Below, in pieces: positions 41,774-52,843 of a DNA stretch of 63,973 bases. Source of the DNA: Vitrella brassicaformis CCMP3155 (Eukaryota; Protista; Chromerida); the NCBI GenBank assembly GCA_001179505.1, contig CDMY01000305.1, positions 186,028 through 250,000 on the forward strand, in the 5' to 3' direction. The notes below the pieces were generated by a model. That model was given only the letters and a program-made list of their open reading frames with translations. It was not told the DNA's origin and searched no databases. The translations under genes were made by a program, and so were the position numbers. Position 1 is the stretch's first letter. Every line of letters begins with the position of its first letter.

Positions 41774-43118
41774 GTGCACGTGTGGACTGTGCAGGTCGGT
41801 TCCCAAGCAGCTTCCGCACTCAGTCGTTCGACGACACCTTCGGCCCGCCCCCCACAGTGCGCACCAGGGCGGACTGAATGACTTCATTGTTTGTATGCTG
41901 CTGCATGGGTGGATGCGCGCAGACAGCCAGAGGGAAAGGGGGGAGGGGGGGAGGTCAGGTGGGCTGCCAAACGAAGCTGTTAGTCTTCTTACATGGTGGG
42001 TGGATGGATGGATGGATGGATGGGACAACCTTCAGCTGAGAGACATGGCGTCAAGGAGACAGAGAGACACGCACTTGTACATTTCTGGTAGTGAGATGCG
42101 CACGGTGGGAGGAGAGGTGGATGCGTGATGGGGGGGGGGGGGNNNNNNNNNNNNNNNNNNNNNNNNNNNNNNNNNNNNNNNNNNNNNNNNNNNNNNNNNN
42201 NNNNNNNNNNNNNNNNNNNNNNNNNNNNNNNNNNNNNNNNNNNNNNNNNNNNNNNNNNNNNNNNNNNNNNNNNNNNNNNNNNNNNNNNNNNNNNNNNNNN
42301 NNNNNNNNNNNNNNNNNNNNNNNNNNNNNNNNNNNNNNNNNNNNNNNNNNNNNNNNNNNNNNNNNNNNNNNNNNNNNNNNNNNNNNNNNNNNNNNNNNNN
42401 NNNNNNNNNNNNNNNNNNNNNNNNNNNNNNNNNNNNNNNNNNGGGCGGGGATTTTTCTCTCTTGGGGCTGGCTCATGGGTGTGTGACACTCTTCACCAAA
42501 CTTCGACGACAAAACAGTCCTCGGTGTTGTTTATGCCTTACATATTTGTTCTACTCACAGGTCTGTCTCCACAGCCGTGAATGCACTCACGTCTCCACAG
42601 CGTACAAGATGGCCATATAGTACATCCATCACACAGTCAGTCTGCAACACTTCAAAAACCAGACAGACAGACAGACGCAAAAGAAAGGCGAAAACCAGGT
42701 AGGTGCGCAGATCGATCGTCAGAGCTTCAATAAAGCGGCACTCACGCAGACACGCAAATACAGCCACGCGGCTGCAGCTATGCACAATACGCACACACAC
42801 ACACACACACACACACAGAGGGAATGGAGCCTTCCTATGTGTAGCAGTATGTAGTAGAGGACGTACGGACTTGCGCGCATGAGCATCCCTTCGTCACTCG
42901 GTGGGTGGCGGAAATGACCCCCCCCAAAAAACATCACGAAAGACAAAGGAATGGACGGATAAGTATTAATGCCAGACAGACAGACAGACAGACAGGGGAG
43001 GGCAGTCTGACGCCCACACCACATGGCCCGTCCATATACACATACACACAAATAGATATACATACACACAGCACACACAGCACACACAGCACACACACAC
43101 ACACACACACACGCTCTG

Positions 43119-46100
43119 TCAGGACCGCTTCCCCCCTCTCCGCCCTCCTCTGGCCGTGCTCAACAGCTGTGGAAGAGGCAGACACGCAATGCACGAAGAA
43201 GTAGACGGACGGTCCTCTTGCTCATCGGACGCCAGCTCCGCCCCCACAGCCTCTACAGCAGCATCGTCATCGGCCGCACCCTCCTTGACAGCACCGCTCT
43301 CGACAGCCGGCTGCTTCGACTGCACCGACTGCTCCACTGGACGCTCGACCGCCGACACATACTGCTCTATGGCACGGTCCAGATCCCCTGTTGCTGAAGC
43401 GATGTCACCACCACCGGCCCTGATACGAGAGAACGGGAAGGGCAGAGAGCATGCACACGCAGTGGTTGGGGTAGGAGGTAGGCAGGCAGGCAGGCCCACC
43501 GGGCCACTAAGCGCTGCTCGACGGGGAGCAGTTCGGCAAGGGCAGGAGGCTCCGCGTCCGTTGTTGGTCGGACGAGCACACCATACACCACATTCTTGCC
43601 GCACTGCTTCGACTTCCACTCCAAAACCTATCGATGGATAGATGGACGGATGGATGGATCAGTCAATCAATCAAGGAGAGGAGTGCTGTCTGTCTGTCTG
43701 TCTGTCAGTCTGTGTGTTTGTGTGTGTGTGTGTGTGTTTGTGTTTGTGTGGACCGACAGTCCAGTCGGGCGGCCAGTTGGACCGGTTGTGGACGGTTCTC
43801 GCGTGCACCGAGTCCTTGGCTGAGGAGGAGGGCCAGGAGCAAACACCAACAGACAGCGGCGTGACCAGGCTGACTGACCAGGCGGCTGCAGGTATCCGCT
43901 CTCTCATCTCATCTCATCTCATGTCACCTCTGCTGGCGACAGTCGGAAATTGTTGAGCGGAATCGTTGACCATATAGGCCTCCGGGTCGATGCGCACCTG
44001 CAGCACCACGTAACACCACCGGCCACGATCAACCTAGGGAGGGAGGGATGCACACGCAAACGAACCAGCAGACATCACATCGAGTACCGACTTGACTGAC
44101 TCGGGGGATGGATGGGAATTGTCCGTCCGTCCGTCCACTCACGATGAGTGCCTCGGAGTATGCTTTTGCGTAGTCGAGGGATGGGGTGCAGAAGGTGAAG
44201 AACTGCCCGGGGATGTGGCCCGGCAAAATGCGGATCTGGATGTTGTCGGGGATCTTGAGCAGCCGGTCCTTCACGATGACCGGCACCGTCCTGCGCCGGG
44301 TGCCGTGGTAGGCAGGTAANNNNNNNNNNNNNNNNNNNNNNNNNNNNNNNNNNNNNNNNNNNNNNNNNNNNNNNNNNNNNNNNNNNNNNNNNNNNNNNNN
44401 NNNNNNNNNNNNNNNNNNNNNNNNNNNNNNNNNNNNNNNNNNNNNNNNNNNNNNNNNNNNNNNNNNNNNNNNNNNNNNNNNNNNNNNNNNNNNNNNNNNN
44501 NNNNNNNNNNNNNNNNNNNNNNNNNNNNNNNNNNNNNNNNNNNNNNNNNNNNNNNNNNNNNNNNNNNNNNNNNNNNNNNNNNNNNNNNNNNNNNNNNNNN
44601 NNNNNNNNNNNNNNNNNNNTGAGGAGGAGGGCCAGGAGCAAACACCAACAGACAGCGGCGTGACCAGGCTGACTGACCAGGCGGCTGCAGGTATCCGCTC
44701 TCTCATCTCATCTCATCTCATGTCACCTCTGCTGGCGACAGTCGGAAATTGTTGAGCGGAATCGTTGACCATATAGGCCTCCGGGTCGATGCGCACCTGC
44801 AGCACCACGTAACACCACCGGCCACGATCAACCTAGGGAGGGAGGGATGCACACGCAAACGAACCAGCAGACATCACATCGAGTACCGACTTGACTGACT
44901 CGGGGGATGGATGGGAATTGTCCGTCCGTCCGTCCACTCACGATGAGTGCCTCGGAGTATGCTTTTGCGTAGTCGAGGGATGGGGTGCAGAAGGTGAAGA
45001 ACTGCCCGGGGATGTGGCCCGGCAAAATGCGGATCTGGATGTTGTCGGGGATCTTGAGCAGCCGGTCCTTCACGATGACCGGCACCGTCCTGCGCCGGGT
45101 GCCGTGGTAGGCAGGTAACCTACACACAACCAACCAAAAGCAGCCAAAAGAACCGAACGATCCATCCATCCATCCACCGATGTATCGGTGGTCAGTGAGT
45201 ACCATTCCTCTGACATTTCCTTCTCATCGGGCTGCAGCTTGATGCCGACCCGGTACCAGCCTACCGGCGGCATGTAGCACACCGACGATGGGCCTCTGAC
45301 GACGGACGGACGGATGGGACGGGCGAACCACACACACACAAAAACAAACACATCCATACAGAAGAACAGACAGAGCGCGTGTGTGTGTGTTTGTCTGTGT
45401 GGCTGAGTGGTTCCTCCCTCCCTCCCTCTGGATTGCCTGCCTCGCGTAATATTGGTTGGCAGGCTCCGTGTAGCACTTGGGGCAGAAGCACTTGTCGTAT
45501 CTGCAGATTTATCAAGGAAGCAGCGCACTCATTGCAAACACACATTCACTCATCGATCTCCATCCACTGTGAGAGCAGTGAGCCGCCCACCTCTCGTCGA
45601 GCAACTCAGGGGAAACACCGAGCTGCCGCATCGCCTTGAAGCAAACACACACACACACAGACAGCCACGCACCCTCCCGCCCCACCAGTGTGTGTGTGTG
45701 CAGATACTCGACAGCCACGCACCCTCCCGCCCCACCAATGCGTGTGGGTGCAGATACTCGACAGCCACGCACCCTCCCGCCCCACCTGTGTGTGTGGGTG
45801 CAGATACTCGACAGCCACGCACCCTCCCGCCCCACCAATGCGTGTGGGTGCAGATACTCGACAGCCACGCACCCTCCCGCCCGCACCCTCCCGCCCCACC
45901 AGTGTGTGTGTGTGCAGATACTCGACAGCCACGCACCCTCCCGCCCCACCAGTGTGTGTGTGTGTGCAGATACTCGACAGCCACGCACCCTCCATGTGTG
46001 TGACCGGCAAGCGTCACACCCACCACCAGCAGGCCAGAAAAAGACCGGCAAGCATCACAGCCACCACCAGCAGGCCAGAAAAAGACCGGCAAGCGTCACA

Positions 46101-46378
46101 GCCACCACCAGCAGGCCAGAAAAAGACCGGCAAGCGTCACACCCACCACCAGCAGGCCAGAAAAAGACCGGCAAGCATCACAGCAACCACCAGCAGGCCA
46201 GAAAAAGACCGGCAAGCGTCACAGCTACCACCAGCAGGCCAGAAAAAGACCGGCAAGCGTCACAGCTACCACCAGCAGGCCAGAAAAAGACCGGCAAGCG
46301 TCACACCCACCACCAGCAGGCCAGAAAAAGACCGGCAAGCATCACGACGGTCTTCCTGGCGCCTGACAAAGGCTCCAT
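43119..46378 (-). CDS. Stand-alone NEURL4-type ADP-ribosyltransferase (PARP-like) domain protein, copy 1
   Basis: Spliced product: (MEPLSGARKTV)AMRQLGVSPELLDERYDKCFCPKCY..YYARGPSSVCYMPPVGWYRVGIKL..WLPAYHGT..FCTPSLDYAKAY..YVVLQVRIDPEAY..LEWKSKQCGKNVVYGVLVRP plus an acidic tail. One junction before LEW is ambiguous. Confidence 0.72.
45660..45993. repeat. Intronic minisatellite, about 50-bp unit x about 7
   Basis: Core gcagatactcgacagccacgcaccctcccgccccacc plus a variable (tg)n-type spacer. Confidence 0.9.
46003..46345. repeat. Intronic minisatellite, 41-bp unit x 8.4
   Basis: accggcaagc(g/a)tcaca(g/c)c(c/a/t)accaccagcaggccagaaaaag starts at 46003, 46044, 46085, 46126, 46167, 46208, 46249, 46290 and 46331. 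Confidence 0.95.
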
Positions 46379-48250
46379 TCTGCACACACACGCACAGACA
46401 CACAGAGCCTCTTGCAGTTACTGCCTGGGATGAATCCCTCCCTCCCTCCCTCTGTGTCTGTCTGTGTGTCCGTCCGGTTGTCGCCAACCAACTGAGTGCA
46501 TTCCTTTCGCTCACGCTGCTGGAGAGGGAGGGAGGGAGAGGAGCGCTTGGCCTGCCTGCGTGAAGTCCTCCCAAACGCCCTACTGACTGACTGAATGGCA
46601 GCAATTAGGCAGCCAGCGTAGCCTGCACACATACGCACACATACGCACACAAACATCGAAGGGTTCAGTAGCGCCTGAGTTAATTGTGTGTGTGGCTGTC
46701 AGTTGAAATGGAAAGGGGAGCTCGGTATATATAAGCTCGCATCGATCGTCGATCGGTTTCCTTTGGGGTTTTTCCCATTGCAGGGGTGTAAAGGGGCGAC
46801 TGGCGTGCTCAGCTACACCCTACTGATGCGTGGGATATACGACTGTGACAAATTGGCGTGTGTGACAGCAGTGGGAGACGCTGAATGTGCGCATTCAGAG
46901 AGAGGACGGGCCGCCCGTCTGTGTGTGCACACCCACTTTATTTGCCCCTGCACAAAGGCGACACGTGTCGGCCGGCCGCTGACCGTCCTGTTGATGTGCG
47001 AAACAGCCCCGTGTGTGCAATCGACGCTGAGTAACACATGGGCAAGTGTGTCGGTCAGGCGCACACAGACGCACGCACAGGTGAATGACCATTAAGGCTG
47101 ACCACAGACAGCGTCACTGTAGATGCCCGTGTCAGGCATGCTCTTGCCGTAATTCTCACGCCCCAGTCGCCCCCCTCCGCCCTCTCACCGCTGAGGCCGA
47201 TATGGGTGAGTGTTTGTGGTGACAACAACCTGGGTGTGGACGCATCGACAAGGGCACTCCAGCCAGTTGATTAGACCTTTCCCTATACCTTTGTCCTACC
47301 AGGAATATTTCCGGTCGTTGTTGGACCAATACCCACCTCCACTCCTCAGGCCTCCACTCACCCATCTCGGCAAACACCAGACACCCACACACAATCCGCC
47401 AACAAAAAGACCGGCACGCCTCTACAAAAGACCGGCACGCCTGTTACCTTGTCAGGCACTCACCGGCCGTCATTTTGCTGCCCCAAACACCCACACACGG
47501 CCACTCCACGCTGAGAAACACATGGGCAAGTGTGTGGGCAATTTCGTGAATCCACGTGTGCCCGCCTGCAAGCCCTCATCGCTCTCGTCGTCGAGGCGCT
47601 CGAGGAGAAGGGAGTCATTGTAGACCCCTGCAATGTCGGAATGATGACACTCTGCACCAAACTTCGACGACAAAACAGTCCTCGGTGTTGTTTATGCCTT
47701 ATATATTTCTTCTACTCACAGGTCTGTCTCCACAGCCGTGAATGCACTCACGTCTCCACAGCATACAAGATGGCCATATAGTACATCCATCACACAGTCA
47801 GTCTGCAACACTTCAATAACCAGACAGACAGACAGACGCAAAAGAAAGGCGAAAACCAGGTAGGTGCGCGGATCGATCGTCAGAGCTTCAATAAAGCGGC
47901 ACTCACGCAGACACGCAAACACAGCCACGCGGCTGCAGCTATGCACAATACACACACACACACAGAGGGAATGGAGCCTTCCTATGTGTAGCAGTATGTA
48001 GTAGAGGACGTACGGACTTGCGCGCATGAGCATCCCTTCGTCACTCGGTGGGTGGCGGAAATGACCCAAAAAAAAAGTCACGAAAGACAAAGGAATGGAC
48101 GGATAAGTATTAATGCCAGCCAGCCAGCCAGACAGACAGACAGACAGGGGAGGGCAGTCTGACGCCCACACCACATGGCCCGTCCATATACACATACACA
48201 CAAATAGATATACACACACACAGCACACACACACACACACACACACACAG

Positions 48251-49275
48251 TCAGGACCGCTTCCCCCCTCTCCGCCCTCCTCTGGCCGTGCTCAACAGCT
48301 GTGGAAGAGGCAGACACGCAATGCACGAAGAAGTAGATGGATGCTCCCCTTGCTCATCGGACGCCAGCTCCGCCCCCACAGCCTCTACAGCAGCATCGTC
48401 ATCCGCCGCACCCTCCTTGACAGCACCGCTCTCGACAGCCGGCTGCTTCGACTGCACCGACTGCTCCACTGGACGCTCGACCGCCGACACATACTGCTCT
48501 ATGGCATGGTCCAGATTCCCATCGAGCTCTGCCGCCTCTCCTGTTGCTGAAGCGATGTCACCACCACCGGCCCTGAAACGAGATAAAGGGAAGGACAGAG
48601 AGCATGCACACGCAGTTGTTTGGGTAGGAGGTAGGCAGGCAGGCCCACCGGGCCACTAAGCGCTGCTCGACGGGGAGCAGTTCGGCAAGGGCAGGAGGCT
48701 CCGCGTCCGTTGTTGGTCGGACGAGCACACCATACACCACATTCTTGCCGCACTGCTTCGACTTCCACTCCAAAACCTATCGATGGATAGATGGACGGAT
48801 GGATGGATCAGTCAATCAATCAAGGAGAGGAGTGCTGTCTGTCTGTCTGTCTGTCAGTCTGTGTGTTTGTGTGTGTGTGTGTGTGTTTGTGTTTGTGTGG
48901 ACCGACAGTCCAGTCGGGCGGCCAGTTGGACCGGTTGTGGACGGTTCTCGCGTGCACCGAGTCCTTGGCTGAGGAGGAGGGCCAGGAGCAAACACCAACA
49001 GACAGCGGCGTGACCAGGCTGACTGACCAGGCGGCTGCAGGTATCCGCTCTCTCATCTCATCTCATCTCATGTCACCTCTGCTGGCGACAGTCGGAAATT
49101 GTTGAGCGGAATCGTTGACCATATAGGCCTCCGGGTCGATGCGCACCTGCAGCACCACGTAACACCACCGGCCACGATCAACCTAGGGAGGGAGGGATGC
49201 ACACGCAAACGAACCAGCAGACATCACATCGAGTACCGACTTGACTGACTCGGGGGATGGATGGGAATTGTCCGT
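48251..49275 (-). CDS. NEURL4-type ART-like gene, copy 2 (3' half; rest in gap)
   Basis: Same exons as copy 1 (VDRGRWCYVVLQVRIDPEAY; LEWKSKQCGKNVVYGVLVR; acidic tail), with a 7-aa insertion relative to copy 1. Confidence 0.65.
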
Positions 49276-49575
49276 NNNNNNNNNNNNNNNNNNNNNNNNN
49301 NNNNNNNNNNNNNNNNNNNNNNNNNNNNNNNNNNNNNNNNNNNNNNNNNNNNNNNNNNNNNNNNNNNNNNNNNNNNNNNNNNNNNNNNNNNNNNNNNNNN
49401 NNNNNNNNNNNNNNNNNNNNNNNNNNNNNNNNNNNNNNNNNNNNNNNNNNNNNNNNNNNNNNNNNNNNNNNNNNNNNNNNNNNNNNNNNNNNNNNNNNNN
49501 NNNNNNNNNNNNNNNNNNNNNNNNNNNNNNNNNNNNNNNNNNNNNNNNNNNNNNNNNNNNNNNNNNNNNNNNNNN

Positions 49576-51066
49576 CGCCGACACATACTGCTCTATGGCA
49601 TGGTCCAGATTCCCATCGAGCTCTGCCGCCTCTCCTGTTGCTGAAGCGATGTCACCACCACCGGCCCTGAAACGAGATAAAGGGAAGGACAGAGAGCATG
49701 CACACGCAGTTGTTTGGGTAGGAGGTAGGCAGGCAGGCCCACCGGGCCACTAAGCGCTGCTCGACGGGGAGCAGTTCGGCAAGGGCAGGAGGCTCCGCGT
49801 CCGTTGTTGGTCGGACGAGCACACCATACACCACATTCTTGCCGCACTGCTTCGACTTCCACTCCAAAACCTATCGATGGATAGATGGACGGATGGATGG
49901 ATCAGTCAATCAATCAAGGAGAGGAGTGCTGTCTGTCTGTCTGTCTGTCAGTCTGTGTGTTTGTGTGTGTGTGTGTGTGTTTGTGTTTGTGTGGACCGAC
50001 AGTCCAGTCGGGCGGCCAGTTGGACCGATTGTGGACGGTTCTCGCGTACACCGAGTCCTTGGCTGAGGAGGAGGGCCGGGAGCAAACACCAACAGACAGC
50101 GGCGTGACCAGGCTGACTGACCAGGCGGCTGCAGGTATCCGCTCTCTCATCTCATCTCATCTCATGTCACCTCTGCTGGCGACAGTCGGAAATTGTTGAG
50201 CGGAATCGTTGACCATATAGGCCTCCGGGTCGATGCGCACCTGCAGCACCACGTAACACCACCGGCCACGATCAACCTAGGGAGGGAGGGAGGCACACGC
50301 AAACGAACCAGCAGACATTGAGTACCGACTTGACTCGGGGGATGGATGGGAATTGTCCGTCCGTCCGTCCACTCACTCACTCACGATGAGTGCCTCGGAG
50401 TATGCTTTTGCGTAGTCGAGGGATGGGGTGCAGAAGGTGAAGAACTGCCCGGGGATGTGGCCCGGCAAAATGCGGATCTGGATGTTGTCGGGGATCTTGA
50501 GCAGCCGGTCCTTCACGATGACCGGCACCGTCCTGCGCCGGGTGCCGTGGTAGGCAGGTAACCTACACACAACCAACCAAAAGCAGCCAAAAGAACCGAA
50601 CGATCCATCCATCCATCCACCGATGTATCGGTGGTCAGTGAGTACCATTCCCCTGACATTTCCTTCTCATCGGGCTGCAGCTTGATGCCGACCCGGTACC
50701 AGCCTACCGGCGGCATGTAGCACACCGACGATGGGCCTCTGACGACGGATGGGGATGGGACGGGCGAACCACACACAAACAAACACACACATCCATGCAG
50801 AAAAACAGACAGAGCGTGTGTGTGTGTGTGTGTGTGGCTGAGTGGTTCCTCCCTCCCTCCCTCTGGATTGCCTGCCTCGCGTAATATTGGTTGGCAGGCT
50901 CCGTGTAGCACTTGGGGCAGAAGCACTTGTCGTATCTGCAGATTTATCAAGGAAGCAGCGCACTCATTGCAAACACACATTCACTCATCGATCTCCATCC
51001 ACTGTGAGAGCAGTGAGCCGCCCACCTCTCGTCGAGCAACTCAGGGGAAACACCGAGCTGCCGCAT
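49576..51066 (-). CDS. NEURL4-type ART-like gene, copy 3 (3' end in gap); candidate start MRQLG at 51066
   Basis: The full ART core exons are present and carry substitutions relative to copies 1 and 2 (e.g. EMSGEW vs EMSEEW). Confidence 0.68.
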
Positions 51067-51156
51067 CGCCTTGAACCAAACAGACACACAGACACACACA
51101 CACACACAGACATACACGCCGTGCTGCAGTGTGTTGAAGGCAGATGGTGATTGGTT

Positions 51157-51935
51157 CAGAATCAATCATGGCGATGCCTGCCTGCTTCCATGCTGTGTGC
51201 GCGTGTGTGCTGTATGATGTGCGTACATACCTTATCGGCGAGATCCTTCATGCGACAGGGACCGCCATCCATAGCACTGGATGCAGCGCAGCCCATCGAT
51301 GGTCGCCGTCACAGTGTCATGCATTCACGTGTGTACTGCTTCCCACAGACGGTAGTGCGTTGCCTGGGCGTACCATCTGCCGATTTCTCAGTGCAAGCTT
51401 GCGACAAAACGGCCTGTGCCCAGTTGGGGAGCCTCTGTGGTGCAGAAACCTACTACTTCACTCACTGCCAAGTAAGATATCAACCAGAGGACACACCAGG
51501 GCCTGTGGCTATCTATCGTAGCTGTGCAGGTGTGGAGCGCTTGTACGGGGCTGGTTGCCAAAGAGCATTCATTCACGGAAGTAAGACAGAGATGCATATA
51601 CATACAGACCAATGCACAGCCTCGTCCACACACGACGAAAAAGATAAAAAGAACGTCAGATAAAAAGAACGTCATCGCGCGCACACGCAGACAGACACAG
51701 GAAGGGAATACCTGCACTGTCTGTCAGTCTACAGTCCCTGTGCAGGGAGCTTGCAAGCACCCTACCCTACATTCCCTTTCGTGTGAGTCCTGCCTGCGCA
51801 ATGTTGCGTCTGCTCGTCTGTCACCAACAAATCGTGTTTGTGGCTCTTGGTCGATCATGGTGTCTGAACATGGCATGGCTGCCTGGACATCTGAAGCATT
51901 CAAGCACTCTTCTCAGAACTGACACAACAGACAGG

Positions 51936-51966
<31 letters not shown>

Positions 51967-52843
51967 CCTCAGCCTTGTCTGCGTGTGTCTGCGCTCTTGC
52001 TCACCCGTTCGGTCGTCTGTCAACGATGTCATAGAACGACCGCACCCAGTCGCGCCATGAGTGCTCACCTGACAGACAGACACACGGACACACGGCTTGG
52101 CCAGTCCATCAACGTCAGCTGACTGCTGCAAGCTCTGTCTAACCTGCGACAAACACGTGAATGGGGTTCTCCTTGGTCGTGCCTTCTGTCGTGAACACGT
52201 CGACTATCCGCTCCTGTCTGTCCCGCTCTGCCCCTTCTCCCCAAAACTCCAGACGCGCCGCATCCACGCCTTTCAGGGTGACGCTGTAGCCCCGAAGAAT
52301 ACGCCCGCACAGGCCTTCCAGGGTCTCTTCGGGATAGAAGCAGATCGCAGCAGGGGGCTTAATCTCCAGACCTCGATGTACACACACGTACTTGGCAATC
52401 GCGCGGGGTCTGACCTCTTCGCTCGTCATTTGGTTGCTTTGACCAGCGAGCCAAGCTCTGCGCACCCGGGTCTGCGCTTTCACCGACGAAGATTTCGTCA
52501 CTTGCTGCCGTCTGAGAATCGGCGCCACCCAACACCCAACAGCTGGACCCCTATTGCGACCACCTTCTCCGCTGCGGCACAGAATCAATCATGGCGGTGC
52601 TTGCCTGCTTCCTTGCTGTGCGCGTGTGTGCTGTATGGCGTGCGAACCTTATCGGCGAGATCCTTCATGCGACAGGGACCGCCATCCATGGCACTGGATG
52701 CAGCGCAGCCCATCGATGGTCGCCGTCACAGTGTCATGCATTCGCGTACTGCTTCCCACAGACGGTAGTGCGTTGCCAGATCTGCTGCTTTGAGAGAGCG
52801 TTTTCACGCCTTTAAGTCAATGCAAGCTTGCGACAGAACGGCC
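51157..52843. repeat. Direct repeat pair of about 260 bp: 51157-51414 and 52580-52843
   Basis: Both start cagaatcaatcatggcg, share accttatcggcgagatccttcatgcgacagggaccgccatcc..cagacggtagtgcgttgcc and end tgcaagcttgcgaca(a/g)aacggcc. Confidence 0.9.
51900..52429 (-). CDS. Small protein (about 122 aa) resembling a Crinkler-type N-terminal ubiquitin-like header
   Basis: Exons 52429-52144, 52068-52005 and 51918-51900 join in phase: MTSEEVRPRAIAKYVCVHRG..ETLEGLCGRILRGYSVTLKGVDAARLEFW..IVDVF..NPIHVFVAGEHSWRDW..SEKSA*. Confidence 0.6.

Follow-up and report, generated by a model that had tools for sequence, protein, structure and literature searches.

The window analyzed here is a 63,973-nucleotide stretch of the genome of the chromerid alga Vitrella brassicaformis CCMP3155 (G000:C305:186028-250000), and our main finding is that it probably holds one intron-rich nuclear gene, recently duplicated, for a free-standing protein with an ADP-ribosyltransferase (ART) domain of the NEURL4 type, that is, a PARP-like ART of the H-Y-E clade. 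V. brassicaformis is single celled and related to the malaria parasites; its assembly comprises 72.7 Mb in 1,064 contigs, and the proteins of the locus are on record under CCMP3155. One of the two gene copies, copy B, encodes a protein of 352 amino acids, which belongs to the NEURL4 family by sequence and is closest to the PARPs in its predicted fold. The protein adds a real but fairly ordinary member to a known family that has been little studied.

The region is GC rich and dense in microsatellites, its exons are short, and the ART gene lies on the minus strand. We placed the exon borders by AG acceptors, GT donors, and the joints in RNA-like contigs. The hand-joined spliced model was used only for exon-phase checks and for the comparison of copies, and early searches were made with single exons, whereas later protein searches and folding used P0153, a protein from JGI transcript contigs that is identical to the copy B model. 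Transcript evidence came from cDNA contigs L006 and L007 and from the RNA-like runs X11 and X13, and DNA contigs came from runs X1 and X4. A scan of the locus for bacterial promoters and terminators, which is irrelevant to a eukaryote, found nothing.

Copy B is transcribed, and its spliced exons encode 352 residues

The original prediction, made from the sequence alone, had read a series of ART motifs across spliced exons and in no single open reading frame (ORF), and three-frame translation, the spliced model, and cDNA all agree with it. The minus-strand exons carry YDKCFCPKC, RGPSSVCYMPPVGWYRVGIKL, W/LPAYHGT, TPSLDYA, VVLQVRIDPEAY, LEW, and VVYGVLVR (slashes mark exon junctions), and no single ORF has them all. 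Copy B (47645-51098 plus a first exon, minus strand) consists of 9 exons that join with consistent phases into 1,059 nt, or 352 codons plus the stop. P0153 (352 amino acids) equals this model exactly when exon 7 is taken from the near side of an assembly gap (the pre-gap version, see below), while the post-gap exon 7 gives H188Y. The spliced transcripts are found in two kinds of data: L006 and L007, which encode P0153, lack introns and align to the window one exon at a time, and RNA-like run X11 has CT..AC joints (GT..AG on the minus strand) between exons 4 and 5, 5 and 6, 6 and 7, and 8 and 9.

Beyond the first exon, the model and cDNA together place exon 2 at 51026..51069 (AMRQLGVSPELLDE-), exon 3 at 50876..50935 (YDKCFCPKC..YYA, with the CxCxxC motif), and exon 4 at 50646..50738 (RGPSSVCYMPPVGWYRVGIKL..GEW), the last also bounded by the X11 joint 50560>50644. 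Exon 5 (50385..50562; LPAYHGT..GHIPGQ..FCTPSLDYAKAY) is delimited on both sides by X11 joints (50274>50383 and 50560>50644) and encodes His93, His123, Phe131, Tyr138, and Tyr142. The pre-gap versions of exon 6 (49077..49182; VDRGRWCYVVLQVRIDPEAY..; model and cDNA) and exon 7 (48907..48968; H188; 100% identical to cDNA) are followed by exon 8 (48649..48776; VLEWKSKQCGKNVVYGVLVRP..; Glu206) and exon 9 (48251..48572), which holds an acidic Ala/Gly-rich tail and the stop codon; both are supported by the model and cDNA and are linked by an X11 joint. The 3' untranslated region (UTR) runs to about 47651 (L007 nucleotides 830-1752 correspond to 48573-47651 at 99.9%). Exon 3 ends in a GC donor (GAG/GCAGGC) at 50876, as it does at 45441 in copy A, and this GC-AG intron is borne out by the cDNA contigs, which also confirm the DWT/VLEW junction that was masked in the mapping of reads to the window.

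P0153 begins with an N-terminal peptide (residues 1 to 22) that starts MGCAASS, continues with a predicted ART-fold core at about residues 30 to 230, and ends in an acidic, Ala/Gly-rich, disordered tail from about residue 230 to 352. Hydrophobic segments are absent (over 19 residues, Kyte-Doolittle values reach at most 0.81), and there is, as originally predicted, no signal peptide, the N terminus not being hydrophobic; no mitochondrial presequence is evident either. In the cDNA, the ATG is preceded by an in-frame stop codon at a distance of 15 nt, and the predicted N terminus is therefore MGCAASS. We take this start to fit the usual N-myristoylation pattern (Gly2 and a small residue at position 6), with Cys3 available for palmitoylation; such acylation, if it occurs, would put the protein on a membrane. 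The MGCAASS motif is absent from the paralogues, which keep only the ensuing D(G)PC.MK stretch.

The protein belongs to the NEURL4-type ART family

The NEURL4 ART family was reportedly defined by de Souza and Aravind in 2012. Exon pieces of the window gene and of two paralogues were combined into a profile (A1), which in a search of 1.84 billion proteins yielded 333 cluster representatives at E<=1e-3. Among the best 150 of these 333 matches, 137 have [FYW]HG[TS] and most have the CxCxxC element, and the same spacing recurs, with CxCxxC followed after ~50-60 residues by [FY]HG[TS] and after a further ~100-130 residues by E[LIV]EW. Residues 14-223 of P0153 match residues 787-1003 of a Saccoglossus "neuralized-like protein 4" (P0182) in BLASTP with an E value of 2e-14, and a family profile (A2) aligns to P0182:770-1005 with an hhalign probability of 100% (E 4.7e-65). 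P0182 carries the Pfam Neuralized (E 3.7e-33) and SPRY domains, and the match to the window protein is its C-terminal 217 residues. The direct comparison was made with this Saccoglossus protein; the published motifs of human NEURL4 (HGS, LLS, and ELEW) fit the alignment. These sequence comparisons support the window protein as a stand-alone member of the NEURL4 C-terminal ART-domain family, as originally proposed; it is not a NEURL4 orthologue.

Pfam gave no match to P0153 as a whole or to single exons (no Neuralized, SPRY, or other domain), in keeping with the predicted lack of neuralized repeats, and nothing relevant for the paralogue pieces. The PARP family PF00644 did not match P0153 at E<=1, and when profiles A1 and A2 were run against PDB sequences, no PARP came up and the matches were chance ones only (e.g., Cas7 and USP18). 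The NEURL4 ART domain is itself listed as undetected by Pfam (PMC7955679). A word-index protein search with region 1-88 of the read-through ORF of the paralogue on contig C557 found nothing, within a length window that excludes most relatives.

The relatives differ widely in architecture. Many are free-standing proteins of 200 to 500 amino acids (in rotifers, environmental eukaryotes, and Cryptosporidium ryanae); in amphioxus the domain sits in LRR+ZU5 proteins, several of which are named "NEURL4" by NCBI, and an annelid relative is a SPRY protein with two modules. Salpingoeca F2TYZ7 is a family seed in PMC7955679. We also observed that P0081, a "PARP14-like" protein of the hemichordate Glandiceps talaboti with three Macro domains and WWE, KH, and RRM domains, carries a NEURL4-type domain (residues 1755-1963, with CxCxxC and FHGT) in place of a PARP catalytic domain; PF00644 does not match P0081 at E<=0.001.

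The predicted fold is PARP-like

AlphaFold2, run with the 56-row family alignment, gave a model with a mean pLDDT of 70.7, in which residues 11-170 and 200-235 are mostly above 90 and the chain beyond about residue 245 is disordered. The 50 best Foldseek matches in the PDB (best E 1e-4) are PARP catalytic domains without exception. Their TM-scores of 0.22 to 0.38 are low, for which disorder in a third of the model is part of the reason. Rescoring with VIA-align gave Z scores from 11.2 to 9.5 and root mean square deviations of 3.2 to 5.3 A over 125 to 176 aligned residues (model range 17-229). A search of 48,161 chains that was independent of Foldseek placed PARPs or pseudo-PARPs at all of ranks 1 to 17 (Z 11.0 to 6.9), namely PARP16, PARP4, PARP1, PARP15, PARP10, PARP2, PARP3, PARP13, tankyrases, TASOR, RCD1, and SRO1, and beyond rank 17 there were almost only other folds of the ART superfamily (Tpt1, diphtheria toxin, Rhs ART toxins, exotoxin A, Arr, pertussis toxin, and DarT). 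A piece of a paralogue, searched by its language-model features, likewise pointed to PARP (score 0.93). The model thus predicts a PARP-like ART fold that is nearest to the PARPs, in line with what had been proposed.

Two gene copies, not an array

In self-alignment, 42484-45663 and 47645-51098 form a single direct duplication whose period is 5,161 bp. The locus had been described as a tandem array; taking this to mean at least three complete head-to-tail copies, we found two units only. Each copy is interrupted by a run of Ns whose flanks repeat each other. The flanks of the gap in copy A (44320..44619) overlap exactly, the post-gap segment 44620..45118 (minus strand) being identical to 43821-44319 over 499 bp (100%) and repeating exon 6 and most of exon 5. 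The gap in copy B (49276..49575) is spurious and its flanks overlap as well: the post-gap segment 49576..50360 (minus strand) corresponds to 48482-49275 over 794 bp at 98.4% and is an assembly redundancy that holds second versions of exon 6 (50171-50276), exon 7 (50001-50062, with Y188), and exon 8 (49743-49870) and part of exon 9. Gap B is bridged by an X1 DNA contig, which joins 49245 directly to 50331, and the cDNA crosses the gap uninterrupted, running from the post-gap exon 5 through exons 6 to 8, once only, into the pre-gap exon 9. The gap flanks look like unmerged overlapping contig ends; for gap A, we infer this from the exact 499-bp duplicate and the 2-fold depth. Merging the flanks would shorten the scaffold by 799 bp in copy A and by about 1,085 to 1,094 bp in copy B.

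Contig k-mer depth, a rough proxy for copy number, was 20.4 to 23.2 over the gene and 11.2 to 12.2 over unique flank in the X1 contigs, and 11.5 to 15.3 versus 7.7 to 9.0 in the X4 contigs, so that the gene has about 2 times, and not 4 times, the depth of its flank. The gap-flank repeats, the DNA contig and cDNA that span gap B, and the depth of ~2 times the flank therefore indicate two genes, with the four apparent partial copies collapsing into two. The alternative that the assembler collapsed a true array of three or more genes, the gap-flanking repeats being real extra copies, would account for the post-gap segment of copy B being only 98.4% like the pre-gap segment (including H188Y) and for variants in X1 and X4, e.g., at 50556, 50559, and 50145, that suggest more than two sequence versions in public data. 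However, the depth in two DNA runs is ~2 times and not 3 to 4 times that of the flank, the X1 contig connects 49245 to 50331 directly, and the flanks of gap A are 100% identical over 499 bp. The further variants in the X1 and X4 contigs are few; most of them fall in introns rich in microsatellites, and they may reflect differences between strains or alleles. Even with depth taken as the rough proxy that it is, we consider such an array very improbable. Of the claim that the locus is recently amplified, one recent duplication stands; the copies are only two, one of them lacks exon 1, and the family has about 5 to 6 loci genome-wide.

The public annotation divides the locus into three fragment models, which are fragmentary and partly mis-spliced because of the two false gaps. 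CEM01494.1 is the 5' part of copy A, CEM01495.1 is the 3' part of copy B, and CEM01496.1 is the 5' part of copy B, starting at Met9 in the proximal-type first exon (see below) and wrongly spliced beyond exon 5. The correct product is the 352-residue protein P0153. No contig record encoding the annotated fragment P0001 was found.

Copy A (42484-45663, minus strand) keeps an intact frame of 323 codons over 8 exons, beginning with exon 2. According to the model, its exons 2 to 9 lie at 45591..45634, 45441..45500, 45203..45295, 44942..45119, 43928-44033, 43758-43819, 43500-43627, and 43119-43419, all on the minus strand; exon 4 contains a diagnostic site, with E in place of G before W88, and exon 9 is 7 codons shorter than that of copy B. 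With the redundant segments removed, copies A and B agree at 98.2% over about 2.3 kb of exons and introns, and their coding sequences differ at 10 sites and by a 21-nt indel, mostly in the tail. The duplicated segment reaches from 29 nt upstream of exon 2, within intron 1 (45663 in copy A), to near the end of the 3' UTR (the unit starts at 47645 and L007 ends at 47651). Because the segment begins only 29 nt upstream of exon 2, copy A is without a first exon, and it has no promoter of its own. The cDNA is 100% identical to copy B and 99.0% to copy A at the diagnostic exon 4, and 99.9% versus 93.2% over exon 9 and the 3' UTR; the RNA-like contigs show the copy B letter at 50652. No copy A transcript was seen among the cDNA and RNA-like contigs, in which rare variants can be hidden. 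Use by copy A of the proximal first exon, across copy B, was considered, and we found no evidence for it.

A minisatellite block at 45660..46345 abuts the 5' break of copy A. It consists of two adjoining arrays, with units of about 50 bp and 41 bp in at least 9 copies, in the position of intron 1 where the homology between copies A and B stops, and the duplication breakpoint may be marked by these arrays. Two similar short plus-strand stretches, at 47030-47060 and 47525-47640, lie in the spacer that separates the copies; they start ..ACACATGGGCAAGTGTGT.. (MGKCVG..).

Conserved residues and proposed activity

The catalytic-type residues named in the original prediction are retained in P0153, in YHGT at 92-95 (His93) and LEW at 205-207 (Glu206), with the same spacing as in relatives, and the CxCxxC element (C41-x-C43-x2-C46) lies ~50 residues before His93. 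Among the 56 rows of alignment A2, columns that were not used for row selection are conserved as well (Tyr64, Pro67, Trp70, Trp88, Pro134, Pro164, and Thr178), and His123 is found in 46 rows, Phe or Tyr131 in 54, Tyr138 in 55, and Tyr142 in 52. By motif spacing, Phe131 would occupy the position of the triad Tyr (PARP1 Y896), and Tyr142, 11 residues on, would correspond to PARP1 Y907. Human NEURL4 has Leu at the middle position of the triad (PMC7955679).

The best-supported reading, by analogy with the PARPs and with mutagenesis of human NEURL4, is that the window protein would be an active NAD+-using ADP-ribosyltransferase, intracellular and possibly at a membrane. The ART core would bind NAD+, with His93 of HGT holding its ribose and Phe131 and Tyr142, 11 residues apart like Y896 and Y907 of PARP1, stacking on the nicotinamide, and Glu206 of LEW would catalyze the transfer of ADP-ribose to a target. 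The family-specific C41-x-C43-x2-C46 and the conserved His123 probably form a structural zinc site, and the MGC start, if myristoylated and palmitoylated, would hold the enzyme on the membrane. What the data show is the gene structure and its expression, the family membership, the predicted fold, and the presence of these residues; catalysis, the zinc site, acylation, and the target are inferences. The original prediction had suggested a mono-ART. H-Y-E PARPs include mono- as well as poly-ADP-ribosylating enzymes, the sequence does not distinguish the two, and the only published NEURL4 assay reports poly-ADP-ribosylation (PMC8932523).

Several points weigh against this reading or against the gene model beneath it. 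The rows of A2 were selected for the motifs that hold C41, C46, H93, and E206, which in part accounts for the invariance of these residues there; for His93 and Glu206, the frequency among the 150 unselected matches is the better measure. By motif spacing, the middle position of the triad would be Phe131 and not the canonical Tyr. The PARP likeness is structural only, the Pfam PARP family and PDB sequence searches missing the domain, and pseudo-PARPs such as TASOR have the same fold (Z 7.7). To our knowledge, there is no enzymology for any protist member, and the biochemical support for the family comes from one paper on human NEURL4. As for the gene model, gap A is unbridged by reads, and copy B may use either of two first exons, the cDNA having the distal version and an assembler swap being possible.

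Some of these points would fit a catalytically dead pseudo-ART, whose PARP-like fold would serve as an NAD+- or ADP-ribose-binding or interaction module, as in TASOR, PARP13, and plant RCD1/SRO: by motif spacing, Phe takes the place of Tyr in the triad, the domains of TASOR, PARP13, and RCD1 are among the structural matches (Z 8.7 to 6.9), and biochemistry in the family is limited to human NEURL4. On the other hand, Phe is still able to stack on nicotinamide, and His93 and Glu206 are kept, in nearly all relatives as well, whereas in known pseudo-PARPs one or both of His and Glu are usually missing (table in PMC7955679). ADP-ribosylation activity of NEURL4 was reported by Cardamone et al. in 2022, and in vitro it was abolished by the mutations HGS>AGA and ELEW>ALAA, which affect these same motifs (PMC8932523). 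We therefore regard a dead domain as unlikely, although it is the strongest of the competing explanations, and prefer an active transferase.

First exon and neighboring gene

The first exon found in the cDNA is the version at a distal site, 52648..52806 (minus strand), which comprises the 5' UTR and the first 22 codons (coding sequence 52648-52713, MGCAASSAMDGGPCRMKDLADK) and matches nucleotides 1-160 of L006 and L007 at 100%. A proximal first coding exon at 51231..51296 (minus strand) encodes the same 22 amino acids and has a GTATGT donor; it is 95.6% identical to the cDNA, UTR included, from which it differs by a 4-nt indel, one substitution in the 5' UTR, and one coding C/T site. As both versions encode the same 22 residues, the choice between them has no effect on the protein sequence.

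The distal exon is also spliced to a neighboring gene (51610-52807, minus strand) through the X13 joint 52571>52648, the X13 exons of that gene being 52648-52807, 52142-52571, 52005-52066, and 51610-51918. Either the distal exon is a first exon shared by two alternative continuations, or its place in the ART cDNA comes from a crossover by the transcript assembler within the 42 identical nt ahead of the splice junction. In the neighboring-gene transcript, the MGC frame stops after 28 codons (an upstream ORF), and the longest ORF has 122 amino acids, from 52429. A Pfam scan of its main exon gave no match. In-frame fusion of the neighboring ORF to the ART exons is ruled out by the exon phases.

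Paralogues in the Vitrella genome

A profile search of the whole assembly, which supplies the genome-wide count that the original prediction had proposed, found the window copies, loci on contigs C557, C277, and C347, and a weak one on C409, for about 5 to 6 loci. The closest to the window protein are CEL99314.1 (C277; 44% identity) and CEM03997.1 (51% over 106 amino acids), and the window protein groups only with these two, being at most 35% identical to all other relatives compared. The C557 gene (L004, G000:C557:7620-10769) is of a conserved alveolate type with Cryptosporidium orthologues. Proteins of this type (Vitrella C557, an MMETSP transcript, and Cryptosporidium ryanae; P0003, P0008, and P0010) have in common a C-terminal extension, ..YP.GT.F..WYQP.DG.PPF, and the Vitrella C557 protein has a proline-rich tail. 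In the C277 locus (L005, G000:C277:133265-136345), the ART region of CEL99314.1 is followed at about 2690-2770, in frame 2, by W-x-C-x2-C..N..C-x2-C, which resembles a RanBP2/NZF-type zinc finger; the annotated CEL99314.1 model splices through this stretch.

Alternative roles

The original prediction had also suggested a role in defense, and the window protein could be a conflict effector, a toxin-like ART directed against viruses, bacteria, or competitors and functionally linked to the adjacent gene. The support is circumstantial and at the level of the family. In relatives the domain occurs behind LRR+ZU5 (amphioxus) and in a PARP14-like Macro/WWE protein and is expanded in rotifers, and Aravind and colleagues derived the family from bacterial effectors (PMC3417536). 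At the locus itself, the neighboring gene has the same first exon in transcripts and the duplication is recent and lineage specific. However, the protein has neither a secretion signal nor an immunity-like partner, the genome has only about 5 to 6 family loci, the exon phases preclude an in-frame fusion of neighbor and ART, and animal architectures say nothing direct about Vitrella. We consider this role improbable, at a level clearly below that of a dead domain. About equally doubtful, and frankly speculative, is a more elaborate scheme in which copies A and B, CEL99314.1, and CEM03997.1 would form a chromerid-private NEURL4-type subfamily. In that scheme, the transcribed member would be anchored to the membrane by a myristoyl/palmitoyl switch, and the first exon would be spliced alternatively to the ART exons or to the small neighboring gene (a putative ubiquitin-like "header"), giving a two-output locus for stress or conflict signaling at the cell cortex. 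An intracellular, NAD+-using transferase of the NEURL4 type remains the reading that we favor.

Significance and comparison with known systems

NEURL4-type ARTs are among the least studied ADP-ribosyltransferases, with one activity paper, no experimental structure, and no entry in Pfam. A transcribed member of 352 amino acids with a core of ~200, from a culturable alga related to apicomplexans, would be a convenient protein for the structure and enzymology of the family. Together with the Cryptosporidium relatives, the window gene extends the family into the apicomplexan lineage. The concrete gains are a corrected gene model and the collapse of two false gaps.

Compared with NEURL4, the window protein is homologous over the whole C-terminal ART domain (about 210 residues), with the same PARP-like fold and the same order of motifs: CxCxxC, Y.xP.GW.R, [FY]HG[ST], SPS..Y, P.(S)Y, E[LIV]EW, and YG(L/V)L. 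It differs in having no Neuralized (NHR/SPRY) repeats, in its length of 352 versus 1,562 amino acids, with only 22+15 residues ahead of the domain, and in having HGT where NEURL4 has HGS and, by motif spacing, Phe where NEURL4 has Leu in the middle of the triad; unlike NEURL4, it starts with an MGC peptide of its own and ends in a disordered acidic tail. The stand-alone or fused NEURL4-like proteins of Salpingoeca, rotifers, amphioxus, and Cryptosporidium have the same domain and are often equally short (200 to 500 amino acids), while the conserved alveolate type (the C557 locus and Cryptosporidium) differs from the window protein in its C-terminal extension.

The catalytic domains of PARPs (PARP16, PARP4, PARP1, and PARP10/12/14/15) are the best structural matches, with Z scores from 11.2 to 9.4 and root mean square deviations of 3.2 to 4.3 A over 128 to 170 aligned residues, and share with the window protein the His and Glu in equivalent motifs and, by motif spacing, two aromatic residues 11 positions apart. 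Sequence identity to them is about 10 to 15%, and the window protein, which lacks the regulatory helical domain of PARPs, has a CxCxxC element at the N-terminal side in addition. The pseudo-PARPs TASOR, PARP13, and RCD1 show the same fold (Z 8.7 to 6.9) but, as tabulated from the literature in PMC7955679, are without the catalytic His and/or Glu, whereas the window protein keeps both.

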